A stretch of DNA of 64,000 nt from Eutreptiella sp. 'Long Island Sound 2002' (taxonomy: Eukaryota > Protista > Euglenida). Each line of letters starts with the position of its first letter. Position 1 is the first letter of the stretch. The notes under the pieces are model-generated. The model searched no databases. It saw only the letters and a program-made list of their open reading frames with translations, and had not been told where the DNA came from. Positions 2 to 57,719 of the stretch are shown in pieces. The stretch lies in assembly GCA_964036045.1 (NCBI GenBank), contig OZ038379.1, positions 2,418,001-2,482,000 of the forward strand, written 5' to 3'. The translations under genes and the position numbers were made by a program.

Positions 2-598
2 ACTCAAAAGCGCAAACGTGCGCGCCAGCCTGAGGCTCGGGTGGCATTGGAGGAACGGGCGCGGAAACGAACAAAAGCTTCTCAGTCAGCCTCTGCTCCT
101 GTTTCTGTCTCTAGTGGTGCGTCAGCATCACGCAGAAGTGACAGTGACAGTGACAGTGACAGTGACGGTGACAGTGATAGTCACAGTGACACTGATAGTG
201 AGCGCACCAGTGGCAGTGGCAGTGGCAGTGACAGTGACAGTGACCCTCCTGCCACTGTCAACAAACCAAAGGCCACAGTTGATGCCCCGATTTTCGCTGC
301 AACCAAGGCAGCTGCTGGTGCTGTTGTAAAACCCAAGGCTGATCTTGTGAATTTTTTGCAACAGCTTGGGTATTCACAGTATGCAGTGCCACTTGCAGCT
401 GCTGGATTTGCATGCATGAAAGAGCTCACTCTTATTAATATGGCAGCACTTAAAAAATGTGGTGTCCTGGATGGCCATGCATTAAGGATTGTTGATGCCT
501 TGAAAAAGAAGCCTGCACCTTCTGCACCAGTTACTGGATCGTCTGCACCAGATTTCATGAAGCTGCGCAAGAAACGGTTGGCTCAGGCGCGTTCGTAG
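2..598 (+). CDS. 5'-truncated ORF: Ser/Asp-rich linker plus C-terminal SAM (sterile alpha motif) domain; host terminal exon or transposon cargo
   Basis: Frame is open from nt 2 to TAG at 596-598. LVNFLQQLGYSQYAVPLAAAGFACMKELTLINMAALKKCGVLDGHALRIVDAL fits the SAM pattern (L..LgL.qY...F ... L...Gv..GH..rI..al). The (GTGACA)n tract at ~137-242 encodes SD repeats. Confidence 0.75.
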   Translation, partial: TQKRKRARQPEARVALEERARKRTKASQSASAPVSVSSGASASRRSDSDSDSDSDGDSDSHSDTDSERTSGSGSGSDSDSDPPATVNKPKATVDAPIFAATKAAAGAVVKPKADLVNFLQQLGYSQYAVPLAAAGFACMKELTLINMAALKKCGVLDGHALRIVDALKKKPAPSAPVTGSSAPDFMKLRKKRLAQARS

Positions 599-951
599 GC
601 GCGCCTGGCTCCTCTTGGAAAACACAATTCTGGGACCATGTTGTGCCAGCCTGTTGCAGTTTTGGACCCCCTGTGTAGTGCATGTGTTGTTGTTTTGTGA
701 CCATTGGAGACTGCTTCAGGCAGGGTTTGTTTGTGCATGAAAAACCAATCTCATCAGATTCACATCACTGTGGTTTGAACCAACGCCTGTGCCATCAGAA
801 CCAAGTGCATGTACCACTGGAGTAATGACCAGATCTGGCATCTAGGTCCTCAAGGGGCATATAAAGACCGAGAGACAAAATTTTTTTTTTGAAAATCGAG
901 AGACATTTTGCGAGACACATGCTTGCTTGGGGCTTTGGGGATTTCAAGGGT

Positions 952-1021
952 GGCGAAATTTTCCCCTGGCGAAATTTTCCCCTGCGAAATTGTCCCCGGG
1001 CGAAGTTTTCCCCCCCCCCTG
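952..1021. mobile_element. Right end of a putative TA-inserting DNA transposon (Tc1/mariner-IS630-like)
   Basis: Four tandem GGCGAAATTTTCCCC-like subterminal motifs end in CCCCCCCTG, directly followed by TA (1022-1023). That TA is the TA in the array-unit context CCGTC-TA-TGGC. The left end is outside the window. Confidence 0.5.
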
Positions 1022-4000
1022 TATGGCTTTTAACATCGCTCTGCAGCCCTGAGTGATCCCCCGTGGACCGCCATTCGGCTCATGCAGGGGCAAAAGTTGA
1101 GAGTCGCTGACTGTTCCTGACTGCTCTTGCGTGGTGGAAGTTGTTTGGGGTGGTTGGTGCGTTTTTGAGGATCCTCCAGGATTGCCGAGGCTTGAGCGGC
1201 CAGGACGGTTAGCGTTGTGCGGAGTTGTTGATGGTCACTGAGCGGTGGGGCAGGTTGGATAGGATTGTGCGGTGAAGGGATTGCTGGCGTGCTTTCTGCT
1301 GCACGAAAATGGGACCCCCTTTGACACCTCAAGTGCCACAATACTACCCCTCGGTAAAACTGACAAGTGGTTGCTTCTTCGGGCCAAATTGCCCAACAAC
1401 CGGCATAATGCCACAACGTTTGTTGTAAACAAGACAACCACCACCTTGTCAGAAATTGCAGACCCATTTCCTGGCTCAGCACCATCTACAGGTGCTAGCC
1501 ATGTATCTCTCACCTTCTGCTAAAATGCCACCGTCGTCTGACAGCAATTGCATCTTCGTGGTCCTTACCTTAGACCTAAGTGCCGTCTCAAGTCCCAGTC
1601 CAAGCTCCAGCACAAGCCCATCTCCAACTCCGAGTCCCAGTCCCAGTCCCAGCCCCGGTGTGTCTGCCATGTACAGTTCTGAACGGTCGCATGGCCTTGG
1701 CATGAGCCGCGCATTTGTCCGTAACGCCACTGTACGTGCAGGGGGTGGGGGCACTTGGGCAATTGCTGTTGCTTTGAGGGACCAACTAGCACCCGAAACT
1801 AGCAAGGCACCATCTACAACAACCATGTGGGTTGGTTGAGCTCGTAACCCGCGAGCAGCCACGCATCTCCATGAGGCACGGAGGAAATACTGGAAGCTCC
1901 CCCATCAGGGGATGCCCGTGTCCAGGTTCCAAGTACGGTTACACACAAAAGCAAAAGCAACAGAAGTACCCAACATGACACCCATACCAAAGGACACTGC
2001 GTGATCCGCCGCCCCCTGACGCCGTGTTCCATTTCGACTCTCACCATTGGGGCGGCTTGGAGCGGTCAGCTCGGGAGACGACCCTGCTCGATGGGTCTGT
2101 GCACGAGTATTGGTGGTTCTATGCGGTTGGAACCACTATTCCGTTCTTTGGGGGTATTCCTGGTCCATCCAAAAAGGTTGACAAAGTGGAGCTGTACGTT
2201 TGGGAAGGTACGTGTTGTTGGCACCGCGCGGAACCCCTGTTTTCTGGCGTCACCTGTTTGACCCTCATCCGTCAGTCGTCCTGTGCAGATCTGTTTCAGG
2301 CGTTGGGCTTTGGGATGTTGGGTGTGCGGGGCTTCCACTTGCCGAGCCTTCCAATCGTCTGTCTGGCAGTCTTGGTCTCAGCAGTCTGTGTTCGCCAGCG
2401 CGGCTCCTGATGCAACAGCCTTTGACCCTTCAGCCGCTGACCAACCTCCCATGACTCTTCACAGCCGCGGACACCGGTCCAAAGCACCGGAACGACCCCG
2501 GGACTGTCAACGGCCGTCAACGCCCCGCGAGCTTTCACAACCCTCAACAATGCTTGACATCCCTCGACAACCGTCAACACAACTACACAATCTCACGACC
2601 TCTGACGACCTTCTGCGACCGTCTATGGCTTTTAACATCGCTCTGCAGCCCTGAGTGATCCCCCGTGGACCGCCATTCGGCTCATGCAGGGGCAAAAGTT
2701 GAGAGTCGCTGACTGTTCCTGACTGCTCTTGCGTGGTGGAAGTTGTTTGGGGTGGTTGGTGCGTTTTTGAGGATCCTCCAGGATTGCCGAGGCTTGAGCG
2801 GCCAGGACGGTTAGCGTTGTGCGGGGTTGTTGATGGTCACTGAGCGGTGGGGCAGGTTGGATAGGATTGTGCGGTGAAGGGATTGCTGGCGTGCTTTCTG
2901 CTGCACGAAAATGGGACCCCCTTTGACACCTCAAGTGCCACAATACTACCCCTCAGTAAAACTGACAAGTGGTTGCTTCTTCGGGCCAAATTGCCCAACA
3001 ACCGGCATAATGCCACAACGTTTGTTGTAAACAAGACAACCACCACCTTGTCAGAAATTGCAGACCCATTTCCTGGCTCAGCACCATCTACAGGTGCTAG
3101 CCATGTATCTCTCACCTTCTGCTAAAATGCCACCGTCGTCTGACAGCAATTGCATCTTCGTGGTCCTTACCTTAGACCTAAGTGCCGTCTCAAGTCCCAG
3201 TCCAAGCTCCAGCACAAGCCCATCTCCAACTCCGAGTCCCAGTCCCAGTCCCAGCCCCGGTGTGTCTGCCATGTACAGTTCTGAACGGTCGCATGGCCTT
3301 GGCATGAGCCGCGCATTTGTCCGTAACGCCACTGTACGTGCAGGGGGTGGGGGCACTTGGGCAATTGCTGTTGCTTTGAGGGACCAACTAGCACCCGAAA
3401 CTAGCAAGGCACCATCTACAACAACCATGTGGGTTGGTTGAGCTCATAACCCGCGAGCAGCCACGCATCTCCATGAGGCACGGAGGAAATACTGGAAGCT
3501 CCCCCATCAGGGGATGCCCGTGTCCAGGTTCCAAGTACGGTTACACACAAAAGCAAAAGCAACAGAAGTACCCAACATGACACCCATACCAAAGGACACT
3601 GCGTGATCCGCCGCCCCCTGACGCCGTGTTCCATTTCGACTCTCACCATTGGGGCGGCTTGGAGCGGTCAGCTCGGGAGACGACCCTGCTCGATGGGTCT
3701 GTGCACGAGTATTGGTGGTTCTATGCGGTTGGAACCACTATTCCGTTCTTTGGGGGTATTCCTGGTCCATCCAAAAAGGTTGACAAAGTGGAGCTGTACG
3801 TTTGGGAAGGTACGTGTTGTTGGCACCGCGCGGAACCCCTGTTTTCTGGCGTCACCTGTTTGACCCTCATCCGTCAGTCGTCCTGTGCAGATCTGTTTCA
3901 GGCGTTGGGCTTTGGGATGTTGGGTGTGCGGGGCTTCCACTTGCCGAGCCTTCCAATCGTTTGTCTGGCAGTCTTGGTCTCAGCAGTCTGTGTTCGCCAG

Positions 4001-7000
4001 CGCGGCTCCTGATGCAACAGCCTTTGACCCTTCAGCCGCTGACCAACCTCCCATGACTCTTCACAGCCGCGGACACCGGTCCAAAGCACCGGAACGACCC
4101 CGGGACTGTCAACGGCCGTCAACGCCCCGCGAGCTTTCACAACCCTCAACAATGCTTGACATCCCTCGACAACCGTCAACACAACTACACAATCTCACGA
4201 CCTCTGACGACCTTCTGCGACCGTCTATGGCTTTTAACATCGCTCTGCAGCCCTGGGTGATCCCCCGTGGACCGCCATTCGGCTCATGCAGGGGCAAAAG
4301 TTGAGAGTCGCTGACTGTTCCTGACTGCTCTTGCGTGGTGGAAGTTGTTTGGGGTGGTCGGTGCGTTTTTGAGGATCCTCCAGGATTGCCGAGGCTTGAG
4401 CGGCCAGGACGGTTAGCGTTGTGCGGGGTTGTTGATGGTCACTGAGCGGTGGGGCAGGTTGGATAGGATTGTGCGGTGAAGGGATTGCTGGCGTGCTTTC
4501 TGCTGCACGAAAATGGGACCCCCTTTGACACCTCAAGTGCCACAATACTACCCCTCGGTAAAACTGACAAGTGGTTGCTTCTTCGGGCCAAATTGCCCAA
4601 CAACCGGCATAATGCCACAACGTTTGTTGTAAACAAGACAACCACCACCTTGTCAGAAATTGCAGACCCATTTCCTGGCTCAGCACCATCTACAGGTGCT
4701 AGCCATGTATCTCTCACCTTCTGCTAAAATGCCACCGTCGTCTGACAGCAATTGCATCTTCGTGGTCCTTACCTTAGACCTAAGTGCCGTCTCAAGTCCC
4801 AGTCCAAGCTCCAGCACAAGCCCATCTCCAACTCCGAGTCCCAGTCCCAGTCCCAGCCCCGGTGTGTCTGCCATGTACAGTTCTGAACGGTCGCATGGCC
4901 TTGGCATGAGCCGCGCATTTGTCCGTAACGCCACTGTACGTGCAGGGGGTGGGGGCACTTGGGCAATTGCTGTTGCTTTGAGGGACCAACTAGCACCCGA
5001 AACTAGCAAGGCACCATCTACAACAACCATGTGGGTTGGTTGAGCTCATAACCCGCGAGCAGCCACGCATCTCCATGAGGCACGGAGGAAATACTGGAAG
5101 CTCCCCCATCAGGGGATGCCCGTGTCCAGGTTCCAAGTACGGTTACACACAAAAGCAAAAGCAACAGAAGTACCCAACATGACACCCATACCAAAGGACA
5201 CTGCGTGATCCGCCGCCCCCTGACGCCGTGTTCCATTTCGACTCTCACCATTGGGGCGGCTTGGAGCGGTCAGCTCGGGAGACGACCCTGCTCGATGGGT
5301 CTGTGCACGAGTATTGGTGGTTCTATGCGGTTGGAACCACTATTCCGTTCTTTGGGGGTATTCCTGGTCCATCCAAAAAGGTTGACAAAGTGGAGCTGTA
5401 CGTTTGGGAAGGTACGTGTTGTTGGCACCGCGCGGAACCCCTGTTTTCTGGCGTCACCTGTTTGACCCTCATCCGTCAGTCGTCCTGTGCAGATCTGTTT
5501 CGGGCGTTGGGCTTTGGGATGTTGGGTGTGCGGGGCTTCCACTTGCCGAGCCTTCCAATCGTTTGTCTGGCAGTCTTGGTCTCAGCAGTCTGTGTTCGCC
5601 AGCGCGGCTCCTGATGCAACAGCCTTTGACCCTTCAGCCGCTGACCAACCTCCCATGACTCTTCACAGCCGCGGACACCGGTCAAAAGCACCGGAACGAC
5701 CCCGGGACTGTCAACGGCCGTCAACGCCCCGCGAGCTTTCACAACCCTCAACAATGCTTGACATCCCTCGACAACCGTCAACACAACTACACAATCTCAC
5801 GACCTCTGACGACCTTCTGCGACCGTCTATGGCTTTTAACATCGCTCTGCAGCCCTGAGTGATCCCCCGTGGACCGCCATTCGGCTCATGCAGGGGCAAA
5901 AGTTGAGAGTCGCTGACTGTTCCTGACTGCTCTTGCGTGGTGGAAGTTGTTTGGGGTGGTTGGTGCGTTTTTGAGGATCCTCCAGGATTGCCGAGGCTTG
6001 AGCGGCCAGGACGGTTAGCGTTGTGCGGGGTTGTTGATGGTCACTGAGCGGTGGGGCAGGTTGGGTAGGATTGTGCGGTGAAGGGATTGCTGGCGTGCTT
6101 TCTGCTGCACGAAAATGGGACCCCCTTTGACACCTCAAGTGCCACAATACTACCCCTCGGTAAAACTGACAAGTGGTTGCTTCTTCGGGCCAAATTGCCC
6201 AACAACCGGCATAATGCCACAACGTTTGTTGTAAACAAGACAACCACCACCTTGTCAGAAATTGCAGACCCATTTCCTGGCTCAGCACCATCTACAGGTG
6301 CTAGCCATGTATCTCTCACCTTCTGCTAAAATGCCACCGTCGTCTGACAGCAATTGCATCTTCGTGGTCCTTACCTTAGACCTAAGTGCCGTCTCAAGTC
6401 CCAGTCCAAGCTCCAGCACAAGCCCATCTCCAACTCCGAGTCCCAGTCCCAGTCCCAGCCCCGGTGTGTCTGCCATGTACAGTTCTGAACGGTCGCATGG
6501 CCTTGGCATGAGCCGCGCATTTGTCCGTAACGCCACTGTACGTGCAGGGGGTGGGGGCACTTGGGCAATTGCTGTTGCTTTGAGGGACCAACTAGCACCC
6601 GAAACTAGCAAGGCACCATCTACAACAACCATGTGGGTTGGTTGAGCTCATAACCCGCGAGCAGCCACGCATCTCCATGAGGCACGGAGGAAATACTGGA
6701 AGCTCCCCCATCAGGGGATGCCCGTGTCCAGGTTCCAAGTACGGTTACACACAAAAGCAAAAGCAACAGAAGTACCCAACATGACACCCATACCAAAGGA
6801 CACTGCGTGATCCGCCGCCCCCTGACGCCGTGTTCCATTTCGACTCTCACCATTGGGGCGGCTTGGAGCGGTCAGCTCGGGAGACGACCCTGCTCGATGG
6901 GTCTGTGCACGAGTATTGGTGGTTCTATGCGGTTGGAACCACTATTCCGTTCTTTGGGGGTATTCCTGGTCCATCCAAAAAGGTTGACAAAGTGGAGCTG

Positions 7001-8370
7001 TACGTTTGGGAAGGTACGTGTTGTTGGCACCGCGCGGAACCCCTGTTTTCTGGCGTCACCTGTTTGACCCTCATCCGTCAGTCGTCCTGTGCAGATCTGT
7101 TTCAGGCGTTGGGCTTTGGGATGTTGGGTGTGCGGGGCTTCCACTTGCCGAGCCTTCCAATCGTTTGTCTGGCAGTCTTGGTCTCAGCAGTCTGTGTTCG
7201 CCAGCGCGGCTCCTGATGCAACAGCCTTTGACCCTTCAGCCGCTGACCAACCTCCCATGACTCTTCACAGCCGCGGACACCGGTCAAAAGCACCGGAACG
7301 ACCCCGGGACTGTCAACGGCCGTCAACGCCCCGCGAGCTTTCACAACCCTCAACAATGCTTGACATCCCTCGACAACCGTCAACACAACTACACAATCTC
7401 ACGACCTCTGACGACCTTCTGCGACCGTCTATGGCTTTTAACATCGCTCTGCAGCCCTGAGTGATCCCCCGTGGACCGCCATTCGGCTCATGCAGGGGCA
7501 AAAGTTGAGAGTCGCTGACTGTTCCTGACTGCTCTTGCGTGGTGGAAGTTGTTTGGGGTGGTTGGTGCGTTTTTGAGGATCCTCCAGGATTGCCGAGGCT
7601 TGAGCGGCCAGGACGGTTAGCGTTGTGCGGGGTTGTTGATGGTCACTGAGCGGTGGGGCAGGTTGGATAGGATTGTGCGGTGAAGGGATTGCTGGCGTGC
7701 TTTCTGCTGCACGAAAATGGGACCCCCTTTGACACCTCAAGTGCCACAATACTACCCCTCGGTAAAACTGACAAGTGGTTGCTTCTTCGGGCCAAATTGC
7801 CCAACAACCGGCATAATGCCACAACGTTTGTTGTAAACAAGACAACCACCACCTTGTCAGAAATTGCAGACCCATTTCCTGGCTCAGCACCATCTACAGG
7901 TGCTAGCCATGTATCTCTCACCTTCTGCTAAAATGCCACCGTCGTCTGACAGCAATTGCATCTTCGTGGTCCTTACCTTAGACCTAAGTGCCGTCTCAAG
8001 TCCCAGTCCAAGCTCCAGCACAAGCCCATCTCCAACTCCGAGTCCCAGTCCCAGTCCCAGCCCCGGTGTGTCTGCCATGTACAGTTCTGAACGGTCGCAT
8101 GGCCTTGGCATGAGCCGCGCATTTGTCCGTAACGCCACTGTACGTGCAGGGGGTGGGGGCACTTGGGCAATTGCTGTTGCAACCCGCGAGCAGCCACGCA
8201 TCTCCATGAGGCACGGAGGAAATACTGGAAGCTCCCCCATCAGGGGATGCCCGTGTCCAGGTTCCAAGTACGGTTACACACAAAAGCAAAAGCAACAGAA
8301 GTACCCAACATGACACCCATACCAAAGGACACTGGGTGATCCGCCGCCCCCTGACGCCGTGATCCATTTC
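1022..8370. repeat. Tandem array, 1602-bp unit, 4 full copies plus a partial fifth
   Basis: Units start at 1022, 2624, 4226, 5828 and 7430, and the ORF track recurs at +1602. Copies differ by a few SNPs. The last copy lacks 73 bp at 8180/8181 and leaves the unit after 8370. Confidence 0.98.
1255..1530 (+). pseudogene. Decayed non-LTR (LINE) RT fragment inside each array unit (also at +1602 multiples)
   Basis: One frame reads GEGIAGVL...SSGQIAQQPA*CHNVCCKQDNHHLVRNCRPISWLSTIYRC*, resembling GPDG...G.iP..W......K......NyRPISLLstiYK. Several stops. Confidence 0.4.
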
Positions 8371-15180: not shown

Positions 15181-17327
15181 GTGGCTAAACCTGCATCTCC
15201 GACTCCAACACCAATCCCCACGGACAAAGTGCAAGTATTGTCAGTGGGAGGGATGCGCCGAGTAAAAGTGGACAAGAAGAAGGTGGTCCCGGAGGTAGTT
15301 GAGCCTGTTGAGGTGCTGCCCCCGGGTTTTGAAGGGTGGAGCTTCCTTGAGCAGATTGGAGTGGGTAGTGCACCCACCATGGAGGAAGTGAAGGCCGCTT
15401 ACAAGAAGTGGGTGTCGTGGTTACACCCTGACAAAAACATGAACAATGTGGCCAAAGCCACCCACCTCTTCAAAAGGTTGACCTCTGGCTACGACGAATG
15501 GAAAGGTGTGCCCGGGGTGGCACCGCCAAGGCCGGCTGAGGAACCACCCAACTACCATTTCAACCCCACATGCTTCAGGTCCAACTTCTGCAACCCCACA
15601 AGCTTGGCGGGGCAAACGGCCCCGGAAGAAGCGCAACCGAGTGCCAAAAACCCAGAAACGGAGGACGACGGAGAGGGTTTTTGGTCATTCTTGCGCACAA
15701 GCAGAAGGCCCGGCCATTCCGAACACGCGAGCGGAACGGGGGCTAGCTGGGGTGAGGGCACACCAAAGGGGGCACCGCCACCGGGGGCTGGAACACAACG
15801 GACCCGGCGCCTCATGTTCCACGTGAGGTTCCGGTGGCACACGCACAACCTCCGCGCCATCCAAGCGGACCGGATCCTTGCAGAGAAAAGGAGGAGAGGG
15901 TGGTTCTCGGACTACCCAAAGGCAGGAAGCAATGTGTACTTATTGGCACCGGACCAAGTGTGCAAAATACGAGTGCTAGCCTCAAGCGTGTGGGTGCCGG
16001 AGGTGAGACGTTGGGAGTCGGAGGTGTTTATCATCGGGGAGGGCATCAACTTCACAGTGGAGGACCAGGGGGGGGGGGGGGGGGCGACATGCTAATTCTC
16101 GACAGAGGGTATAGTTTGGCCAAACTACCCCGTTTTTTCGAAGGGGCTGGAAAATTTGGTTAACACCCGTTTCGCACATTTGAGTTTTGTTGATTTCTCC
16201 CTACTTGCCCCCGGTCCCCGGGTCCCAATTTCTGCACCCCGCAGGCCCTGCTGTCACACCAACAATTTTTAATTTTTAGTCTGATGCTTGCTAGAGGTCT
16301 CAGAGTCCCAATTTTTGCACCATGCAGCCCCCGCTGTCATACCAGGAATTTTTAGTTTTTAGTCTGATGCTTGCCAAAGGTCACAGGGTCCCAATTTCTG
16401 CACCCCGCGGCCCGCGCTGTCACACCATCAATTTTTTGATTTTTAGTCTGATTCTTGCCACAGGTCCCAGGGTCCCAATTTCTGTCTTTGCCTATGTCCG
16501 TTGTCTTCGTCTCTTCACAATATGTCCTCAGTTTTTCTCATGACACAACAACATTCTTCGGAGGTGTTGAGCATCCAACTCGGTGATATCCTTTGCAAAG
16601 GGCTCATTTGCCGACAAGGCTTATGCGAACCAAGTGTTGTGGCCAAGCCGCGCAAGACATAAGGCAGTGAAGGCGTACAGTCCCGCCGGTGTGCCAAAAA
16701 TGGTGAGGCTGACCTACCGCAAAGTACCTACCCCGAAGTACTTTGTTGCATGACTCAAGCCCTGTTGCATGGCGGGAACACCCCAACTCGGGTCACAAGG
16801 TCCAGGCACGTGCCCGGACCAGCTGTGGAGTGACGCCACAAGAGATCTTTGTGAGCAACAACCACACATCGGACTACAAATGAAAAATTCCTGGTACGCC
16901 CGTAGGGGCTGCAGGGAGCAGAAATTGGGACTCTGAGACCTATGGTAAGCATCAGACTAAAAATTGAAAAAATCCTGGTATGACAGCAGGGGCTGCAGGG
17001 TGCAAAAATTGTGGCCCTGGGACCTATGCCAAGCATCAGTCTAAAAATTATACATTCCAGTGAGGGTCACGCGGTGCTTTTTTGCCTTGGTTTTTGTTCA
17101 ATACAAAAACTGTCCCTTTTTTCAGCGGGCAGGTTTGAAATGTGCAAAAACCCCCCAAACTACCCCTTTTTTCGAGGGGGCTGAAAAATTTGGTTAACAC
17201 CCCCATGTGCAAAACTTGCATGTCGCCCCCCCCCCCCCCTGTGGAGGACACAACGAGGTTGATGCAAAACTTGCATAGGACAAACGTGATTGCCGAGCAA
17301 GTAGGCATCCGGCTGTACAAGGAGTAG
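15181..17327 (+). CDS. Retroposon ORF (join 15181-16065,17250-17327; 320 aa once the MITE and one TSD are removed): DnaJ/J-domain plus C-terminal domain, possibly ASCH/PUA-like; disrupted in this copy
   Basis: LEQIGVGSAPTMEEVKAAYKKWVSWLHPDKNMNNVAKATHLFKRLTSGYDEW has J-domain helices and HPD (15424-15432). Removing the insertion restores INFTVED-TTRLMQNL...RLYKE*, as in the uninterrupted copy at 33880-33982. Confidence 0.85.
16066..17241. mobile_element. hAT-like non-autonomous DNA transposon (1176 bp)
   Basis: TIRs CAG(G)nCGACATGC / GCATGTCG(C)nCTG. 8-bp TSD TGGAGGAC at 16058-16065 and 17242-17249. The empty site is seen in the paralogue at ~33897. ~83-bp subterminal repeats: x3 on the left, x2 inverted on the right. 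Confidence 0.92.
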
Positions 17328-18679
17328 AAGCTGGAAGCCATGGGAGAAGCGGGAAAGCCCCACCCTCGGGTGACAAAGGTGTGTGGATGCGCACGGTCGC
17401 AAAATCCCGACGGCGACAAGGTGACGGGGTGCAACATGTTCAGCGCAGTGCCGAGCACAAAGGCGCGACCCGGAACGCACCATGGCATGGCCTAGGCCTT
17501 GAAGCAAGAGGGACCGAGACCGGGCGCCAAGCGACCAGGGAACCCAAGGGACGGGCCACCCCGTGCCGTGGGAAGGAAGATGAATGGAAAAGTAAAAGCC
17601 CGATGGGAAAGAGAGTCTCACTCCATCGACACAGCTTAGCTGGGGAGGAGAAGATCCTCCGGCCACCGAGACTTCCACTGGGGAGCCGCGGCCCCCAGTG
17701 ATACAGCAACAAGGCACAACGATGTGGTCCAAGGTACGTCCGTGGACGGGCCTCCGGACCCCCCTGCCCAATGAAAACGGCGCCGCAGTCTCCATTGGAT
17801 GCGCCCCGGCTACCACAACGCGCAGCGAGCTTTCTCGCCGGTGGAGTTGGGGGCAAGGCAGGGGGAAGGCAACCCCTGCACTTTTTGAGCCTGGGTGGTG
17901 ACCGACACCAACCATAAAAACCCAATGAAGTCAACACGTGCACCGAGTTCTTCTCGGGGGGTCCAACGGGGCCTCAACAAGATGCCCGATGTGGCAACGC
18001 AAGCCCACCGGGGGCCGCGCTCTCAAGGGAGTGACCACGGCAGTAAGCCTTAGCGTGCTAGCACTGAGAAGCGAGCAGGGGAGAGACATCTCCCCTCACG
18101 CAGCGACTCAACTAGAAAAGGGATGCACCACATCGTCAAGCGCCCGGACCAAGCTAGGATAAGCACCCGTCCTCTCCTGCTCCTCAACCCACAGCACCCA
18201 CTGCGCCGCCCAACACCCACCGCGGGGTGGAGCCGCCCGCTTGTACCCAACAACGGACAACACCCGCCACAACCCACACCCATGCGCGCCATGCGTGGCT
18301 AAGGGGACGCAACACGCGCAACAAAGGCACGAAGGAGAGAGTAGGGGGTTCGTGTTGCGCTCGCCAAAGGAAGGACTGAGCGCGGGAACTTGGAGGCGGA
18401 AGGTTGTTATGTGCCCCCGTCGGAGAAACAACTCCGCAAGTGGACATCGCGGGGCCCACCAGCCGCCGTTGGGGAGAGGTACCTCACCGCCGGCTTGGGA
18501 TGGCCGCTTGGCGAAGGCATTTGCCTTCCTCTGCGTGAACTCAACGCAGAGAAGTGAAACAGGGCAAGTCCGGGGGCTCCGTTGGCACAACCGACCAAGG
18601 GAAAGGAAAGGGAAGGGGTGGTGAGAGGCCGATGGGCACCACGGCCTATGGACCACCACTGCATATCTTTAAATGAGGG

Positions 18680-19035
18680 GCTGGGGGTATTTTTACAGCT
18701 GCTGAGATTCGCCATGGGGACCAAATGTGCTCCTGCATGGGCACAGCTGGTCCTCCGAATGTACGAGCTGAAAAACCCCCTCCCGAATTCCCTATTGCTG
18801 ATGTGCTATATTGATGATGGCTTGACTTTCCATCCTATCACAATGACTTTGTCTGGTTTCAAAGGGGGCGCCAAAACCATGATAACACCAACCTTGACCA
18901 TGGAACAAATGAACCATGAAATGGGACGTAATTGAGAATTGGGGAGGCCACATCGCAGAAAAGGAGTCGAATCTTTGGACCTCGAATTCAACCTCCCCTC
19001 CCCTGGCGCACGTAATTCAAGTCATCCATGCAATC
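18680..19035 (+). pseudogene. Penelope-like element RT fragment
   Basis: FLQLLRFAMGTKCAPAWAQLVLRMYE (Q..G.AMG...AP..A.L....E), MCYIDDGL, VESLDL (FLDL-like), NSSHP. Confidence 0.75.
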
Positions 19036-30400: not shown

Positions 30401-33400
30401 GCTCGCCATCGTCGATTTGTTGGCTCAAGCTCTGTGTTTCTGTGGCTTTGTGTGGATGTGTGTATAAAAGTGTGTACTGATTTGTGTGGACACATGTGTG
30501 GATGTGTGTGTTTTTGGTTTTGTCTGTGGATGTGGATGTGATCATGCGTTGATGTGTGTGTGTGTGTGTGTGGCTGTCTGTGTGGATGCCTGTGTGGTAT
30601 GTCCCAGGTATGTGCCCGGTGAGGGGCCTGGGGAGAGTGTCCCGGTCCGCGCATGGACACTGCCCCGGGAGTGCTGTGCTTGGGGATGGGGATTAGGCTA
30701 TGGACCAAGCCCCCGTGACCTGCCTGCCAAACGCCGCCCAGTCGGTAGTCACTGCCGGGCTAAGGGCCCTGACCCGTGAGACTGCGTCCCCTTCCCCCAA
30801 GGAGGGGTGGCGGACCGGACCGGAAAAGGAGCCGGTGCTCCGCCTCGCCCCCCTTTCCATCCCAAGGGTCCAAGGGAAGGGCAGCGAATGGCGATCGGCC
30901 AGTAGGTGCCGCCAGCTGCAGACGAGATCATCACACCATGGCGTCATGCCAAAACCCCCTTTCCATCCCATGGGGGGGTACCAGCAGCGCATGGGGTGGG
31001 TGTGCGTGTGCGTTGTGTGGGCCAGGGGATCATGGGGAGGGGACAAAGAGGAGAACCGCGGCCATGATGCTTAGCCGGCCGGGCCGGGACAGAGGCCTCC
31101 AATCGTGGCTAGATCGGTGAGGGCCGGCGGGCACCATGGGGTTGTGTGGCGGGTGTGCCCTACCGGGGGACCGCATCGCCTCCTCCTCCTCCTCCTCCTG
31201 GGTGCGGATGTGTTTGTGTGGATTTGTATGCGGTTTTGTCTGTGTGTGGATGTGTGCCGAAGGAGCTGTTACCAGAAGGCACTGGCTGGGATGCCGTACC
31301 AGTTTGAACTGGTGGACAAGGTGTGGGCCCTGAAAGCTGAACCCTAAAACCTACACCTCTTGGTTGTGGGCCAAGGAGTCCCTACTCACCCTTGGACTTG
31401 AACTGGCGGGTCTGTTTTGCTTCACGGCCATCAGTCCACGGTAGCACAAGGCAACCCCTGCTGCTCAACCGCCCATGGGCCCACGTGGGCGTCCAGCCAC
31501 TGTGCCAAGCGCTGGTGCCCAGGTCGCCAATCATGTGTCATGTGCCTGTGCACAGCAGCACCAGATGTGGCAAGCCGTCTCCAGGGGGCCGCCATATAGC
31601 ACACACGGTGTGGAGCATCGTCTAACGGTGTGCGGCTCGCTCTACCGGGACCATTTTGGTGGGGGTAGGTTCTCATGCCGTGGGCAACGATGTGCTGCTT
31701 GTTCTCCGTGGAACCAATCCGTAGGGAGGCCTAGTTGTGGCTGCGGCGGGTAGTTAAGCCCCTAGCGGTCCTTGTTGAACACGTCCGAAGGGGCAGCCAT
31801 TTGTTTGGCTTGTCACTCCGAGAGGTTTAAGGGTGCAAGCGAGCAGTGGTCTCAGTACAGCCACTCCGGGACCACGGTATCCGGGCGCTAGAGTAGCCAG
31901 GTCTCGGTCATACTTGGGCACCACATCTATCCTGATATTGAGGTTGGTGATCTAGTATGCGGGGGCATTTAGGATGTTGATGGTGCAATGGGGCTAGACG
32001 TGCTCCCCTCGCAGTACAGTAGCATAGAGGAGGTGTATACCATCCCAATGGCCTCCCTCTTGGTACGTTCATAGGGCCCCAACCAATGCCTCCGGGTCTG
32101 AGACGATCCAGTAAGTACTAGTTGAGGGACATAGGAGAGCACTATCTTTGACTCTCCAATTGCCACCTAGGCCCAGGGGATGGTGAAATTTGGCTTGCGC
32201 CTTGGGGGGTCCACAGTAGTCGCCACAACGGGGGGGGCCAAGCGCCCCTGGTCCTCGGCTTTTTCTTTCCCCCCCTTCCCTCGGATCACCTGCTGCAGGT
32301 TGCCAACACTTGTCAGACAATAATGTCACTCCAAAATAGCCCCCCCCCCCGCCCCCCCCCTCCGAAGCTTACCAATAGACTCCGTTATCGGATGCGACTG
32401 ACACTTAAGGGGGCTCCTCAGGCTCCACCTCAGGAGGCGCAATGCCCAACCCTTCATAAAGTGGGCGAGGTGAAACACACACTCATACCTCCCCATCCCA
32501 TTGGGGCCTAAAAGTTTAACGTGACACCTCTCCTTTATTGGCTCCCTCCAGTTAGGAAAAGGGGGGCGGAAGTATCTTTTTTTAGACACCAATTTGGGTT
32601 TTCTGCATTTTACCGGTGAAAATGGTAGACATAATTGCCCACCCTTTCAAGCCTTTTCTTCTCGCTCGGCACGAAAATGAAAACCCCTCCCTATCCCCAT
32701 GGCTTGTGCACAATGAGTATGCGGCTTTTTGCAATTGATGGCCCACAGGTTTTTAGCTGTTGCCCCAGCCCTACAGCATTGGAGGCCCATGTACCCCTAT
32801 GGTAGGTCCACATTGAGCACAATCACAATCACCATCTTCACCGTCATCACTTTTATCGCAGTCATGATTACAATCAACATTCACATCGCAATCACCATCA
32901 CATTCTACGATTACACCTAATCCCAACACCCGCATTGAACCTGCTATTACACATATTCCTCTTCCCGTAGAGCGTCTCCGTGCTCCTTTCACATGTGCAA
33001 CTCATCAGCACGAACCTTGATCTCTCCACCACAAGAGCTTTGGACCATGTTCTGCGGGAGAGAGCAATTGTCCACCTGTGCCAGCCGCCTTCCGCTGCTA
33101 GCCACACTGCTGTTTAGGATGCCGTCGCTCATTTGAGGAATGGTGCCTACACTGGGGCACCACATGGAGATGTGCATGAAGTTTGCCTTCCCGTTTCTAT
33201 TTTTGGCACCATACACCCAACCCCCGCAATGGGTGGCCGTGGTTTGTATTCATTAATGGCATGTTGTTTGGATTGTTTGCCCCCGACCCCTCCTTTTGCC
33301 ACCCACCTCTTCAAAAGGTTGACCTCCGGCTACGAGGAATGGAAAGGTGCGCCCGGGGTGGTACCGCCAAGGCCGGCGGAGGAAGCACCCAACTACCAGT

Positions 33401-36400
33401 TCAAGCCAATATACTTCCGATCCAACTTTTGCAACACCACAAGTTCGGCTGGCAAACGGACCTGGAAGAAGCGCAACCAAGTGCCAACAACCCAGAAACA
33501 GAGGGCAATGGAGAGGGTTTTTGGTCATTCTTGTGGAGAAGCAAAAGGCCCGGCCGTTCCGAACATGCGAGCGGAATGGGGGCTAGCTGGGATGAGGGTA
33601 CACCGAAGGGGGCACAGCCACCAGGGTCGGGAACGCAATGGACCCGGCGCCTCATGTTCCATGAGAGGTTCCGGTGGCACACGCACAACGTCCGCGCCAT
33701 CCAAGCGGGCGGATCCTCGCCAAGAAAAGGAGGAGAGGGTGGTTCTCGGACTGCCCAGAGGCAGGAAGCAATATGTACTTATTGGCACCGGAGTAGGTGT
33801 ACAAAGTACGAGTGCTAGCCTCAAGCCTGTGGGTGCCGGAGGTGAGACGTTGGGAGCCGGAAGTATTCATCATCGGGGAGGGCATCAACTTCACAGCTGA
33901 GGACACAACCAGATTGATGCAAAACTTGCATAAGGCAAACGTGATTGCCGAGCAAGTAGGCATCCGGCTGTACAAGGAGTAGAAGCTGGAAGCCATGGGA
34001 GAAGTGGACAAGCCCCACCCGCGGGTGACAAAAGGGCGTGGAAGCGCTCCGTCGCAAAGTTCCGACAGCGTCAAGGTGAAGGGGTGCAACTTGATCAGCG
34101 CAGTGCCGAGCACAAAGCCGCAACCCGGAACGCACCATGGCATGGCCTAGGCCTTGAAGCAAGATGGACCGAGACCGGGCGCCAAGTGACTCAGGAACCC
34201 AAGGGACGGGCAACACTGCGCCGGGAAAAAAAAAAAGAACAAAAAAAAAGCAAAAAGCCTGATGGAAAGGAGAGTCTCACACCATCAACGCAGCTCAGCC
34301 GGGGAGGAGAAGATCCTCCAGCCACCGAGACTCACACTGGGGAGCCGCGGCCCCAAGTGATACAGCAACAAGGCACAACGATGTGGTTCAAGGTATGGCC
34401 GTGGATGGGCCTCTAGACACTCCCGCCCAATGGAAACGGCGCCACAGTCTCCTTTGGATGCGCCCCGGCTATCACAACGCACAGCGAGCTTTCTCGCCGG
34501 CGGAGTAGGGGGCAAGGCCAAACACCAGGCAACGGGAAGGCAACCCCCGCACTTTTATAGCCAGGGTGGTACCCAACACCAACCGCTCAAGCCCAATGAA
34601 GTCAACACGTGCACCGAGTTCTTCTCGGGGGGTCCAACGGGGCCTCAGCAAGATGCCCGATGAGGTAACGCAAGCCCACTGGGGGCCGCGCTCTCAAGGG
34701 AGTGACCACGGCAGTAAGCCCCAGCGTGCTGGCACTGAGAAGTGAGCAGGGAAGAGACATCTTCCCTCGCGTAGCGACTCAACCAAAAAAGGGACGCACC
34801 ACGTTGTCAAGCGGCCGGACCAGGCCAGGATAAGGGGGCCAGCAAGGGGCCCATCACAGCTCCACCCAACACGGGATAACACCGTCAACCCAGCAACAAC
34901 TCGCTCCTATGTGGAGGTGGTCTGGGGAGTCGCGCCAAGAAGTGGGCGGCCAACGACGACAAGTGGCCCACCCCACAGCACCCGCTACATCCTACTCCTC
35001 CGCGCACCCACACGCACCCCACAACACCCATCCGCTCGCGGGGCACCAGCGCTCTTCAACGCACCGCACCCGGTGTGCCGCCCAACACCCACCGTGGCGT
35101 GGAGCTGCCCGTTGCCACCCAACAACGGACAACACCCGCAACAACCCACACCCACACACGCCATGGGTGGCCAACAGGACGCAACACGCGCAGCAACGGG
35201 ATGAAGGAGAGGGTAGGGGGTTTGTGTTGCGCTCGCCAAAGGAAGGACTAAGCGCGGGAACTTGGAAGCAAAAGGTTGTTACGTGCCCCCGTCAGGGAAA
35301 TGACCCCGCAAGTGGCCATGCGAGGGCCCACCAGCCGCCGTTGGGGAGAGGTATTCCACTGCGGGCTTGGGGTGGCCGCTTGGACGCACCTGGCCAATGG
35401 CGAAGGCATTTGCCTTCCTCTGCGTGGACTCGACGCAGAGAAGTGAAACAGGGCAAGTCCGGGGGCTCCGTTGGCACAACCGACCAAGGGAATGGGAAGG
35501 GAAAGAGTGGTGTGAGGCCGATGGGCACTGTGGCCTATGGAGGGAAAGGCCAAGGGAAAGGAAAGGGTAGGGGAGAGGGACAGCTAGGGCAGGGAGGAAG
35601 AGGAAGGTCACAGGGTGGTGAGAGGCCGATGGACACCACCGCCTATGGAGGGAAAGGGTCCAAGGGAAGGGCAGCGAATGGCGATCGGCCAGTAGGTGCC
35701 GCCAGCTGCAGACGACATCATCACACCATGGATGGCGTCATGCCAAAACCCCCCTCCATTTGCAACCGATAGCCTGGGTTGCAGTTTTCATATGGGTTGT
35801 CGGGCGCATGATACTAGGGTCTACAAATGTACAATTGCGTGATTTGCCACCCCAAACTCTGGTGAGGTTGGCTTGCAATTTGAAAGTTCCATGCACAGTA
35901 GTGCAAGAGGTGGAACATTTGTACGATGTGGTTACTGAATCCAAGGGGCTGTCAACCAGCTGTGTGCATGCTATGTCATTTTGTAGTCTCAGGAGCATTA
36001 TACACCATTTTTGCCTTTGGCTACATCCCGTCCACACCCTGCGTCCCACTTCCTGCCGGCGAAATGGTGAATTTGTTTGTATTGCTAAATATTAGCCTGC
36101 CTTTACATTGGCCAACCTCGCGTTTGGCAGAATTTTTGTAGGTTGTGTGCCAACAGTACACTCAAGCAGTGGCACCTGCGTCACGTGATCAAACACGTAA
36201 TAGATTGCTCGAGGCATCTTTTCCAAGTGTAAGCCACCCGTCAACCCCATGCTGCACACCATTTTGCCCCGTGTGTTGATGTTTTGATGAATTTCTTTGT
36301 GCAGAAGAAACACACCTGCAAAAATTGAATGCCGAGGCACAAGTGCCAGGCAGTGGTAGGCATTTGCATTTCTCTTCTCGAATCAGGGAGTGGTTGCAAG

Positions 36401-41470: not shown

Positions 41471-44400
41471 ATCCTGTGGGCAGATGGGACTTTGGGCAGA
41501 TGCATAGCCCGGATGGTCAACACTGCATTCTGGGACGGAGGACACAGCACTTTCTGGCTGCTTCCTTCGAGCTGCTGGTGGCGGGGGTCACAGGCACCCA
41601 GGGACAAGAAATTGATTGACTGTGGTGGTAGACTGGATACTGTGCATCTTGTATGCCACGTATGCTGTACGCTGTATTCCCAGTTCCACGCCACTGCCCA
41701 TTGGGGTGTTTGTCCCTCAAGTGGGACTTTTGGGGTCTCCGAGCGGGGATCCTGAAGGGGGGGGAATTGTTGCACAACGGGATGGCTGTGCTTGCGAAAA
41801 CGGCAGTGGGCCTGGCATAGAATGTAAGGGCCCCGAACGGGTTCTGAAGTACCGTGAAGAGGCCTCTCTCTGCCTGAGGCGTTGCCGCAAGGCCGTTGGA
41901 GCAGGGCGTGAAGCACTCTCCGATCTCGTACGCCTAGACATTGCCCGGCGGGTTCACGGGCCCGGGCCGTACAGGGCTAAGAATGGGATCGTTGGGGTAT
42001 GGGGGATAAGAAGGTCACGACCGGGCGGTGGCCTCAAGTGAATAGATGCAGTCTGTGACGCGTTTTCGAGAAGGTCAACAGCGAGGACTTCAACGCACTG
42101 TGCACTGCAGTCCCCCGTCTGCTTTGCAGGTTCTGGTGGCAACGGACGTGGCAGCACGCGGCATGGACGTGTCTGGGGTTGAGCTGGTGCTGCACTGCGG
42201 ACTGCCGGTGACGCAGCACTCTGCTGCCCGGCGAGTGGGTGGGCAGGGGGTCAAGGTCTGTTCCGATGAAGTGCGCTGTGTTTGTGTGTGTACGTCGTGT
42301 ATGTGTCTGCATGCGTGCGAGCGCCTGCCCGACTGCGGGATTTGCCAAGGGCACTGGTAAGCGGCGGCCCTTTCCTTCCCCTGCTGGTGGAAACCCGCCT
42401 GCTTGCCATTGCCCTTACTTCCATCGGTGCGCATGCCCTTGCCTCTGCCCGTGCCCCTGGTTGCGCCCCTGCCACTACCGTTGCCTGTGCCCCGACAGTG
42501 TCCCTGTCCCTGTCACACAAGTACGAAGGGTCGGCCATCACGTGTCCAAAGGGGCCTTTGATATGCGGTGAACTCGACTTCGTGTTCGATCACAATTCCG
42601 CAATGCCCCGTAACGTACACCTACGGGCCAGCGCTCCCGCCAGTGCGTGACATGGGGTCTACGCAGTTGGTTGTGGGCGATGCATTGCAGGGGCTGTTCC
42701 TTCGCACCCTTTCGAGCGTGGGTGAGCTGCGCGGTAATGCAGAGCTGGGCGAGGCTCCATGACCTTGTTCTGCGAGTTTTGCGCCTGGTCTGATGATGGG
42801 GGCGGTCTGATGACAGCGGTGCACGTCAAGTAGCGGAGGGGCTGTGTCGGGGCAGATCAGAGGCGCAGCCATCATCCCTTCAGCCACGTCCTGCATGCAT
42901 GGCACTTGCTGATTGCTGGGAGGCACTGGCGTCGCCGGTGTATTTTCTCTTGGCTGAGTGCGATGGTTTGGCTCACGCACTGATGAACGTTTGGCACTCG
43001 ATGTCCATTGCTTTGTTGCTCCGTGTCTTGTTTGCCGAGATGCGTGTGTGCGTGTATACGGGAAGGGATTGTGTGAGGGTTTGCGGGCAGCACTGTCTTT
43101 TGCGACGGTCTCTTGGCATCTTCTCACAACCCCAGCACTGCCACAATTACCGGAGACCTGCGACGGCAGGCGTTCAGTCCACAACGACCACTCTCGGTCA
43201 AATGGTGTGCGGTGTGTTTGGGTGGTGGATGTGTGGCTTTGGGTGTGGGGCGGTCTACGTACGTGTTTGAGCATAGGTGTGCAGCCGTGTGGGTGTGGGC
43301 GTGGGTCTCGGGGATGGGGATCCGAGTCGATGTGTACTGCGTGCGGCTCGCCACAGATCCACATCGAGAATTTCACGCACCGCTGCGGGCGCACGGGGCG
43401 CGCCGGCAGCCTGGGCACTTCCCTCCTCCTCTACGACCCCGGCGCCGGTGAAGCCAAGCAGCTTCCGAAACTTGCGGCCCGTCTCAACATCGTCTTCCAG
43501 CGCACCCACTGCCCGAGTGCCGAAGAGGTCGCGGCGGCGTACGCCGCCGGCTCTGCTGGACACGTGCGCCGCTTCACGGGGGGCGCCGAAATGTTGCCCG
43601 ACGCGTTTGCGGGTCAGGCCGAGCGGCTGCAGGCGGAGTTGGGGGCAGGGGCCCTCGCAGCGGCGCTGGCGGCGCTTGCGGGCCTCAGTGCCATGCCGCC
43701 CTCCCGGTCGCTGTTGACCAGTCGTCCGGGGTTTCGGACCGTGCAGGCCGTTCCGGTGGAGGAGGACGGGGATGCGGAGGCCCCGGCGGAGGGCGAGGCC
43801 CAGCCCTCAGGTCTGCGTCCCAAAGAGGTCTGTCCCTTGCAACGCCCCCTCCCCCCCCCCCATCCGACCAAGGGAATGGGAAGGGAAGGAATGGTGTGAG
43901 GCCAATGGGCACTGCGGCCTACGGAGGGAAAGGCCAAGGGAAGGGGAAGGGAAGGGGAGAGGGAAGGTTAGGGCATGGAGGAAGAGGAAGGTCAAAGGGT
44001 GGTGAGAAGCCGATGGGCACCACCGCCTATGGAGGGAAAGGGTCCAAGGGAAGGGCAGCGAATGGCGATCGGCGATCGGCGCCGCCAGCTGCAGACGAGA
44101 ACATCACACCATGGGGTCATGCCAAACCCCCCCCCCCATCCCGTTGTGAGGACTCGCACACAGGCTCATGCCACAGACTCGCGCCCCGTGCATCCCTCGT
44201 TCGCAAGCCCCACGGCACTCCCGATGGTACACTTCCCACGTCGTTTGCGTTGGAAAGCTCCCTCCAAACTTTAAGGTCTTGGCAGTGGCTGAATGCGAAA
44301 CCTGTCAGCTCTGGTAGGGGAACGGAGGCCAGGGGAGCAGGCGGCCATTGTGAATGGGTCTGTGGTAAACTTAGTCAAAAAATTTTCAAACAAATTGTTT

Positions 44401-57629: not shown

Positions 57630-57719
57630 CCCCCCCCCCCCCCGTCCCCTCTAGGTCCCCCCCCCAACTGACCCCCCCCCCTTGGCCCTGAAAGTGGCAC
57701 TGAAGCGGGAAGGAGTTGG

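Follow-up and report, generated by a model that had tools for sequence, protein, structure and literature searches.

The J-domain frame that recurs in the 64,000-nt stretch of Eutreptiella sp. 'Long Island Sound 2002' analysed here (contig OZ038379.1; hereafter the window) belongs, with a probability that we put at nearly 0.9, to a high-copy, recently active Penelope-like element (PLE) of the endonuclease-first Naiad/Chlamys clade that carries a Chlamys-type nuclease, and the loci in the window are dead, 5′-truncated insertions of this element. The initial annotation had described a dispersed retroposon family with a J-domain carried inside the retrotransposed element, and both points were borne out. 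Its proposal that the J-domain frame is the only ORF of the family and encodes an ORF1p-like protein was contradicted. The frame instead forms the C-terminal portion of a giant frame, in which a GIY-YIG endonuclease (EN) and a reverse transcriptase (RT) are encoded as well. Longer, RT-bearing copies, for which the initial annotation had advised a search, exist elsewhere in the genome, and they point to neither of the two alternatives it had named, an ordinary LINE or a host DnaJ retrocopy, the full copies being Penelope-like and of the endonuclease-first clade. All analyses used natural copies only.

The full unit, copies of which were found elsewhere in the 2.28-Gb euglenid genome, is ~8.6 kb long, and in full-length copies the J-domain frame makes up the last ~330 codons of a single frame of about 2,100–2,700 codons. 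This frame comprises, in order, the N-terminal GIY-YIG endonuclease, a CxC motif, a telomerase-like RT, a CCCH finger and an acidic repeat region; these are followed by a JAMM/MPN+ deubiquitinase, a PHD-like finger, two KOW-like stretches, the HPD J-domain and a conserved tail of ~115 residues. One copy (L041) is open over 2,104 codons, and stop-free frames of 2,500–2,790 codons were present in ~17 of the 73 copies scored. Pfam detected JAB and DnaJ on the giant frame. In the full-length copies, which lie outside the window, the JAMM domain scored 28.7 bits with PF01398 (cut-off 22.5) and 30.2 with PF14464 (cut-off 25), and its metal site, E...HxHx7Sx2D, is intact (KETMGLLWG plus HTHPGHVPVLSALD, i.e. 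E...HTHPGHVPVLSALD). In front of each full-length copy examined stands a partial tandem copy whose end coincides with the 3′ end of the element, forming a pseudo-LTR of variable length (605 to >790 bp), and the open frame continues through it. The 3′ 'ORF2' region was also considered as a gene and is not claimed as one, the coding constraint on the open frame of this region and the pseudo-LTR being weak (dN/dS 0.54–0.76 vs 0.6–1.3 in other frames).

Neither the RT nor the EN was detected by Pfam on the giant frame or on pieces cut from it, and sequence searches of the PDB, with a single piece or with a 3-row profile, returned nothing relevant. Because these searches were blank, the classification as a PLE is based on profiles, motifs and predicted structure. 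The AlphaFold model of the EN–RT part had a pLDDT of 89, and the 15 best PDB matches to it in Foldseek were all telomerase RTs (E 3.8e-9 to 9.5e-5). With VIA-align, TERTs reached Z-scores of 12.2–15.4, against 10.9 for R2, 10.3 for L1 ORF2p and 9.8 for group II, a ranking that expresses structural similarity and not phylogeny. By the same method, residues 54–153 of the model matched the GIY-YIG domain of I-TevI (1ln0) with a Z-score of 10.0 and an rmsd of 2.0 Å over 88 of 92 residues. A profile search gave 2,625 relatives, and an alignment of 50 sequences (47 retrieved relatives and three query rows) was examined, in which Pfam recognized GIY-YIG in 19 of the 50 sequences and RVT_1 in 17. The motifs of this alignment were GxIY..YVGQT..R..H, RE..W...P.G.N, CxC, GxKF/Y, DKA, PK.HK, MGTNCAP.LANL and FR.IDD. 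The element's own EN motifs, AYMMY..KAYAGVAY..R.. and RE.FW...P.GFN, align with IY..YVGQT..R..HW and RE..W..P.G.N of the relatives, and the R, H, E and N residues expected of an N-terminal GIY-YIG are present. Between EN and RT, TSCNCFKH (CxC) and KGYKFK (GxKF/Y) occupy conserved alignment columns. The column of the DKG motif, which is DKA in Naiads and DK in Chlamys, reads E-D-R-G/A-P-H in the euglenid group, with R for K after an unchanged D, and more distant relatives have DKA or DKL. The distance from the motif-A Asp to the motif-B Gln, that is, from RT3(A) to RT4(B), where an insertion-in-fingers-like segment may lie, is 92 residues, compared with 63–108 (median 93) in the relatives. When the EN region of P0004 (EukProt EG_transcript_489) was used for a word-index search, only P0004 itself came up; in the euglenid genome P0004 had no match closer than 51% identity and its best-scoring match was at 47%, and its own family is either absent from this genome or unassembled.

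Chlamys elements are the endonuclease-first PLEs of green algae, spike mosses and Physarum, with a reported length of 3.3–8.2 kb, and CxC, GxKF/Y, pseudo-LTRs and targeting of C-runs or (CA)n characterize endonuclease-first PLEs in general (Craig, Yushenova, Rodriguez & Arkhipova 2021, PMC8557442). The present family resembles Chlamys in its N-terminal GIY-YIG without the CCHH cysteines, CxC and GxKF/Y, a putative long insert separating RT3(A) from RT4(B), pseudo-LTRs arising from partial tandems, frequent 5′ truncation, the lack of a canonical hammerhead, the use of (C)n and (CA)n as insertion sites, and a length near the upper end of the Chlamys range. It differs from Chlamys in having DR(G/A) for DK(G/A) and WK..K for PK.HK, in the size of the unit (8.6 kb) and of its giant frame (about 2,300–2,700 codons), and in its host, a euglenid, a group unmentioned in PMC8557442. 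A further difference is the set of C-terminal domains, namely CCCH, JAMM (OTU in close relatives), PHD-like, KOW-like and J-domain, none of which is named at that place in PMC8557442. A point of likeness in the same paper is Chlamys-1_cBra, whose C-terminal extension contains a Josephin-like deubiquitinase motif. The paper also cites Dualen for a Josephin-like protease, and it mentions PHD fingers only where they are inserted into the RT or EN of Chlamydomonas families. Metazoan Naiad elements share with the present family the EN–CxC–RT order, pseudo-LTRs, the lack of hammerheads and high copy numbers, but they are 3.4–4.4 kb long and prefer (TA)n, whereas the present family inserts at C-runs and its nuclease core lacks cysteine, there being no Cys between GIY and YIG. 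These nuclease features and the target preference, and not phylogeny, are what suggest a placement with Chlamys rather than with Naiad. TERT, the best structural match of the RT region over ~600 residues, is an expected one since the RTs of PLEs are the sister group of TERT; sequence identity to TERT is only ~10–12%, and the present element, unlike TERT, is mobile, multi-copy and equipped with a nuclease. Neither a telomerase RNA nor any association with telomeres was observed for the element.

The C-terminal part of the frame is under constraint. The dN/dS ratio was 0.26 overall, 0.16 for the J-domain (measured against a young copy) and 0.22 for the tail, and it was 0.14 against a 96% identical copy. 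Across subfamilies differing by 4–12%, values ranged from 0.16 to 0.26, which is the signature of purifying selection (dN/dS<1) that the initial annotation had proposed to look for. The last 328 codons were stop-free in 22 of the 29 copies sampled, and in 21 of the 23 that are ≥98% identical to L041. The J-domain of the young copy scored 32.9 bits in Pfam, helices flank the HPD at pLDDT 60–67 in the predicted model, and the tail block AIQADRILAEKRRRGWFSDYPE is near-invariant even across decayed copies. In relatives with 40–45% identity in the RT, a J-domain with its HPD is kept on the same C-terminal side of the deubiquitinase, which is an OTU in place of the JAMM; more distant relatives have a USP or a Josephin. 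These data bear on the possibility that the J-domain and tail are a passenger, captured recently from a host DnaJ gene or transduced as a flank, that plays no part in the life cycle of the element. Accessory domains of transposons are often lineage-specific captures, and a word-index search with the tail returned members of the J-domain family only (82–99% identity); the low dN/dS across subfamilies, the HPD J-domains of relatives that far diverged in the RT and the intact last 328 codons nevertheless make this reading highly improbable. As for the tail itself, the initial annotation had proposed an ASCH/PUA-like domain, an idea that found no support: at an E-value of 10 Pfam returned DnaJ alone and no ASCH/PUA, the AlphaFold model of J-domain plus tail, built on a shallow alignment, had a pLDDT of 37.9 and is unusable for fold, and an Atlas feature search yielded nothing to follow, its best score being 0.78, to unnamed bacterial clusters.

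The two long copies in the window, both on the forward strand, are 5′-truncated, and BLAST and Pfam confirmed that they share an HPD J-domain frame as first described. Aligned to each other, 15457–16065 corresponds to 33298–33904 and 17244–18652 to 33899–35541, at 86–93% identity. BLAST against a full-length copy delimited copy 1 as 15219–16065 plus 17241–18652 and copy 2 as 33298–35757; the true 5′ boundary of copy 1 is at ~15219–15223. The 5′ piece of copy 1 (15219–16065; 90% identical to positions 6983–7829 of a second full-length copy, L042) covers the final ~282 codons of the giant frame: what is left of the second KOW-like stretch, then the J-domain, a linker and the greater part of the conserved tail. 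Its translation corresponds to the last part of the L041 frame of 2,104 codons. Within the 304-codon frame at 15181–16095, Pfam detected DnaJ at 28.1 bits (cut-off 27.8; E 2.2e-6); the PF00226 stretch lies at 15358–15492 (residues 60–104 of the frame starting at 15181), with the HPD tripeptide at 15424–15432. The first part of the conserved tail (FHVRFRW...FTVED), with the AIQADRILAEKRRRGWFSDYPE block, occupies 15817–16065. There the tail is split by a foreign, MITE-like foldback element of ~1.18 kb (16066–17241), which has the terminal inverted repeat CAG(G)n CGACATGC / GCATGTCG(C)n CTG, interior inverted repeats of 83–84 nt and an 8-bp duplication, TGGAGGAC, at 16058–16065 and 17242–17249. 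Sequence comparison found this insertion neither in copy 2 nor in any other copy compared. The giant frame's final 25 codons (TTRLMQNLHRTNVIAEQVGIRLYKE) and the stop follow at 17250–17327, ending as in L041 and copy 2. The 3′ region of copy 1 (17328–18652) is 88% identical to L042 up to position 9302 and is the same sequence as the pseudo-LTR preceding full-length copies; it is also shortened at its 3′ end, stopping at 18652, ~210 bp before the true end of the element.

Copy 2 begins at 33298, past the HPD and within helix III of the J-domain, and is bounded by a 13-bp target-site duplication with one mismatch (left CCCCTCCTTTTGC, 33287–33299; right CCCCTCCATTTGC, 35751–35763), in agreement with the initial annotation on both counts. 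Its coding remnant (33298–33982) is split across three frames by two 1-nt deletions and contains one internal stop. The 3′ region (33983–35750) is complete, contains 63/108-nt tandem repeats coding for G/K and ends ...CATCACACCATGGATGGCGTCATGCCAAAA, followed by the target C-run. Pfam and a profile scan likewise upheld the view that the 1.8-kb 3′ part holds no RT or endonuclease, and in the window's six frames the scan did not find the EN or RT of the J-domain element. The same scan of the six frames picked up a borderline RT4(B)-like fragment at 18558–18932, which belongs to another element. Copies 1 and 2 are dead 5′-truncated insertions without a start, EN or RT, and no functional product is expected from them.

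Seen from the window, the family could be taken for an RT-less, non-autonomous retroposon whose sole gene is a ~320-residue, ORF1p-like protein with J-domain and ASCH/PUA domain that recruits Hsp70 to the RNP: the J-domain frame is indeed the sole recognisable coding part within the window, and its tail is conserved and constrained. This is highly improbable, however, as untruncated copies are stop-free for a further ~1,800–2,400 codons upstream, through JAMM, RT and EN, as the apparent GTG start at 15181 is flanking DNA outside copy 1, and as the tail combines the absence of any ASCH/PUA match at E 10 with an unusable model. That the window holds merely the protein tail and the 3′ region is due to the frequent 5′ truncation of the Penelope-like element.

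Four additional 5′-truncated copies, again on the forward strand and with the 3′ end common to the family, were found in the window. The most extreme retains the last ~91 bp (30864–30954) between the two sites of a 15-bp duplication, CCCCCTTTCCATCCC (30849–30863 and 30955–30969); two others, with the last ~277 bp (43861–44137) and ~215 bp (45606–45820), sit in C-runs, and the fourth has the last ~1.07 kb of the unit over 1,184 bp (56458–57641) with a C-run at its end. In total, the window holds six copies with one 3′ end (copy 1 being cut ~210 bp short of it) and C-run duplications. Genome-wide, a first look gave 90 candidates for the EN, at least 299 for the J region and at least 2,335 for the 3′ region, and DNA depth rose from 52 to 5,978 from 5′ to 3′ along the element. 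That 3′ ends vastly outnumber 5′ ends is explained by the frequent 5′ truncation. In reads, 5′ flanks terminate in C-runs or (CA)n, and target duplications open with C-runs. No hammerhead was found by Rfam at E 1 on L041 and L042, nor a CUGAUGA box in the terminal regions. Copies that are 99–100% identical and the many intact giant frames indicate that the family is young. The RNA evidence consists of metatranscriptome contigs, possibly holding DNA. As to the host, the Euglena-type spliced leader had 7,483 occurrences vs 0 for a control, in keeping with a euglenid, and the dinoflagellate spliced leader gave 0 matches, which speaks against a dinoflagellate.

Among non-LTR elements, Dualen/RandI likewise encodes a retrotransposon polyprotein with a deubiquitinase-type (Josephin/OTU-like cysteine-protease) domain, which is thought to interfere with protein degradation, but these elements have APE and RLE nucleases and a LINE RT, and a J-domain is unreported for them. 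A LINE, e.g. a Dualen-like one with a deubiquitinase domain and a long frame, is scarcely credible here: 5′ truncation, TSDs and deubiquitinase-type accessory domains do occur in LINEs, but the nuclease is of the GIY-YIG type (Z 10.0 to I-TevI) rather than an APE or RLE, telomerase is the nearest structural match of the RT, ahead of both R2 and L1, and CxC, GxKF/Y, the pseudo-LTRs and the C-run/(CA)n targeting point to endonuclease-first PLEs.

By analogy with the PLE mechanism, the nuclease of the Penelope-like element would nick the target, and at this nick the RT would copy the RNA, beginning with its 3′ end. The J-domain may dock host Hsp70 on the giant polyprotein or on the RNA complex, for folding, assembly or remodelling, and the deubiquitinase may strip ubiquitin and so shield the element protein from degradation, or act on chromatin. 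We tentatively propose, at somewhat short of even odds, that the deubiquitinase and J-domain block is a working 'proteostasis-hijack' module that is required for retrotransposition and in which the ubiquitin remover has been swapped (JAMM, OTU, USP, Josephin) across endonuclease-first PLEs. That the deubiquitinase position is occupied by no fewer than four unrelated protease folds among related elements argues that the activity as such is under selection. Viruses, too, encode HPD J-domains (polyomavirus T antigens) or deubiquitinases (the OTUs of nairoviruses and arteriviruses); this is an analogy only, in which sequence kinship is limited to the shared domain families, and here both domains reside in one retrotransposon polyprotein. 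No paper describing a PLE with GIY-YIG, telomerase-like RT, deubiquitinase and J-domain together was found in the literature.

Among mobile elements, PLEs are the nearest kin of telomerase, and their dealings with the host cell are poorly understood. The present family adds euglenids as a host lineage for endonuclease-first PLEs that is absent from PMC8557442. For annotation, it illustrates that RTs to which Pfam is blind let truncated copies pass as RT-less retroposons. If the proposed module is real, it would contain the first J-domain known in a retrotransposon, i.e. the element's own Hsp70 recruiter, and the swapping of protease folds would imply that ubiquitin-dependent restriction is a general barrier to endonuclease-first PLEs. 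The conserved pairing of deubiquitinase and J-domain offers a testable handle on the conflict between host and element over protein quality control.

The loci at 15219-18652 (copy 1) and 33298-35750 (copy 2) are both truncated and dead; they derive from a Penelope-like element (PLE) of the Chlamys type that has a deubiquitinase and J-domain extension. Repeat search of the window and alignment matched 15457-16065 with 33298-33904 and 17244-18652 with 33899-35541, at 86-93% identity. The frame at 15181-16095 scored 28.1 bits against Pfam DnaJ, barely over the gathering score of 27.8, and the HPD of the J-domain lies at 15424-15432 in copy 1; copy 2 starts at 33298, beyond the position of the HPD, and is flanked by CCCCTCCTTTTGC and CCCCTCCATTTGC. 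That is, repeat search, Pfam match and flank sequences bear out the two long copies with an HPD J-domain frame, the second between flanking repeats, described in the initial annotation. The ORF proposed to begin at 15181 does contain the J-domain, but its start has to be abandoned, as the first 13 codons are flanking DNA and other copies match only from 15219. The window holds six family copies, all on the + strand and with a common element end position, of which copy 1 itself falls ~210 bp short. In copy 1 the frame tail (the conserved ~115-residue end following the J-domain) is interrupted at 16066-17241, where a foldback element of 1.18 kb has inserted, accompanied by an 8-bp duplication, TGGAGGAC. 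This insertion is MITE-like, with hAT-like features, a terminal inverted repeat CAG(G)17CGACATGC / GCATGTCG(C)14CTG and an interior of 83-84-nt tandem units laid out as inverted arrays. Adjoining copy 1 where its 3′ part breaks off, 18558-18932 carries a reverse transcriptase (RT) fragment, FAMGTKCAPAWAQ...CYIDDG, with a borderline match (E 1e-3) to the RT4(B) block of an endonuclease-first PLE profile; it is probably a remnant from another PLE family.

Elsewhere in the genome the J-domain frame belongs to something much larger. In L041, a young full-length copy, it is the end of a 2,104-codon frame. The observation behind the initial annotation stands, and its interpretation is borne out in part: the stand-alone J-domain ORF is not. 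At many J-region loci the frame is open up to the 5′ edge of the retrieved DNA; in the full-length copy L042 the giant frame is in two pieces of 1,232 and 1,280 codons with a frameshift between them, and ~17 copies listed by a genome-wide protein search have frames of 2,500-2,790 codons uninterrupted by stops. From the giant frame Pfam recovered JAB/MPN and DnaJ and nothing else; inspection by eye added RT-like motifs (GFGMGLKCAVFLANL and YRFVDDMF), a start resembling GIY-YIG and a CxC motif. A word-index search found 40-45% identical relatives that are 1,200-1,440 residues long and carry OTU and DnaJ domains, among them EukProt EG_transcript_489; with a full HMMER profile search the relatives retrieved numbered 2,625. 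Their alignment displays the canonical motifs GxIY..YVGQT..R..H, RE..W...P.G.N, CPC, GxKFR, DKA, LPYLY..PK.HK..RFIAG, DF.TMY, GIPMGTNCAP.LANL and FR.IDD. Of its 50 sequences, which comprise 47 retrieved relatives and three query rows, Pfam assigned GIY-YIG to 19 and RVT_1 to 17. Given this alignment, AlphaFold modelled the endonuclease (EN) and RT part confidently (pLDDT 89.1, pTM 0.76), and the top 15 PDB matches of the model in Foldseek were telomerase RTs without exception; an exhaustive structural scan likewise placed TERTs first (Z 12.2-15.4), with R2 and L1 lower, and model residues 54-153 matched the GIY-YIG domain of I-TevI (Z 10.0, rmsd 2.0 Å, 88/92 residues). The lineage has another, diverged family in this genome, at L043 (C24:3424122-3428930, minus strand). 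Its identity is 42% with the main family and 47% with EG_transcript_489, and its 1,487-codon open frame comprises GIY-YIG, CxC, RT and a CCCH finger.

J-region DNA gave at least 299 first-look candidates in the 2.28-Gb genome, the scored ones spread over many chromosomes; EN gave 90 and the 3′ region 2,335. The depth of a DNA run climbs from 52 to 5,978 along the element. Counts and depth together constitute the 5′-truncation gradient of target-primed reverse transcription. Ahead of each full-length copy examined lies a 3′ fragment whose length varies from 605 to over 790 bp, a pseudo-LTR structure; target duplications begin with C-runs, and the 5′ flanks in reads terminate in C-runs or (CA)n. 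Open frames and predicted proteins cross the tandem-unit junctions (C-terminus of the predicted protein P0003, ENA contig; L042 840-900): the C-terminus of P0003 reads MGSDNYWE..., the N-terminal start of the following unit, and family units have an ATG within their last ~20 nt (CACACCATGGC), immediately ahead of the junction. At C18:13.16-13.37 Mb, at least 12 full-length copies (L045, L046, L049, L053 and others), all on the minus strand, form a dense, single-strand cluster over ~200 kb. Internally deleted copies also occur (L034 and L040, C10:62.81-62.83 Mb; protein P0015): in one, ~2.3 kb is missing from the N-terminal half, a stretch running from EN up to and including the RT palm motifs (L042 2187-4517), and in another the CCCH finger is joined straight to the KOW-like and J region, without JAMM. 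Tandem repeats of 63/108 nt in the 3′ region (window 35487-35657; L042 9300-9420) differ in number among copies and would encode a G/K-rich peptide, GKGKG...PMGTTAYGGKG; constraint on the open frame of this region is weak. RNA evidence consists of metatranscriptome contigs, possibly with DNA carry-over, that match the JAMM and J portions and the 3′ region. The 24-nt Euglena-type spliced leader had 7,483 matches in the genome against 0 for the control, dispersed over both strands (e.g. L057, L058) and mostly exact among those listed; the dinoflagellate spliced leader had 0. These counts mark the host as a euglenid.

Endonuclease-first PLEs are defined by an N-terminal GIY-YIG, CxC and GxKF/Y motifs, a modified DKG motif, an insertion-in-fingers segment, partial-tandem pseudo-LTRs, 5′ truncation and a lack of canonical hammerheads, and Chlamys elements additionally lack the CCHH cysteines and insert at (CA)n and (C)n (Craig et al. 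2021, PMC8557442). The family has these clade and Chlamys features apart from the DK motif and the fingers insert, and its assignment is by features. No hammerhead was found in the family, and its nuclease core has no cysteine. The DK motif, however, reads DR in this family, and the putative fingers insert measures 92 residues from motif A to motif B. Craig et al. (PMC8557442) mention neither euglenids nor DnaJ nor OTU, and literature searches returned no description of PLEs with Euglena, PLEs with DnaJ or J-domains with transposable elements; in the searchable literature we found no paper describing a deubiquitinase and J-domain extension of a Chlamys-type PLE.

The J-domain and the tail are under purifying selection. 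Pairwise Nei-Gojobori dN/dS between L041 and copy 1 was 0.26 overall, 0.16 in the J-domain and 0.22 in the tail, and between L041 and a 96% identical copy 0.14 overall and 0.065 in the tail. The last 328 codons are stop-free in 22 of 29 sampled copies (21 of the 23 that are ≥98% identical to L041), and the near-invariant block AIQADRILAEKRRRGWFSDYPE is kept even in decayed copies. An HPD J-domain is also kept downstream of a deubiquitinase in relatives only 40-45% identical in RT. Together these results show that the element maintains its J-domain, which is not a passenger. The tail had no relatives outside the family, no Pfam match, no usable structural model and no Atlas lead, leaving the proposed ASCH/PUA-like domain unsupported. 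The deubiquitinase of the main family is a JAMM domain whose E...HxHx7Sx2D site is intact; the nearest relatives have OTU in its position, and more distant endonuclease-first relatives have USP/UCH (three long proteins) or Josephin (one). In Craig et al. (PMC8557442) the sole counterpart reported is a weak motif of Josephin type from a single Chara family. Since four unrelated folds occupy one position, these sequences suggest that deubiquitinase activity itself is under selection.

Following the PLE model, the GIY-YIG nuclease would nick a C-rich target, and target-primed reverse transcription would then start at the RNA 3′ end. The deubiquitinase could protect the element's protein or, jointly with the PHD-like finger, act on chromatin. 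The J-domain would recruit Hsp70 for folding, assembly or remodelling of the ~2,600-residue polyprotein or the RNP, and may also have a role at chromatin.
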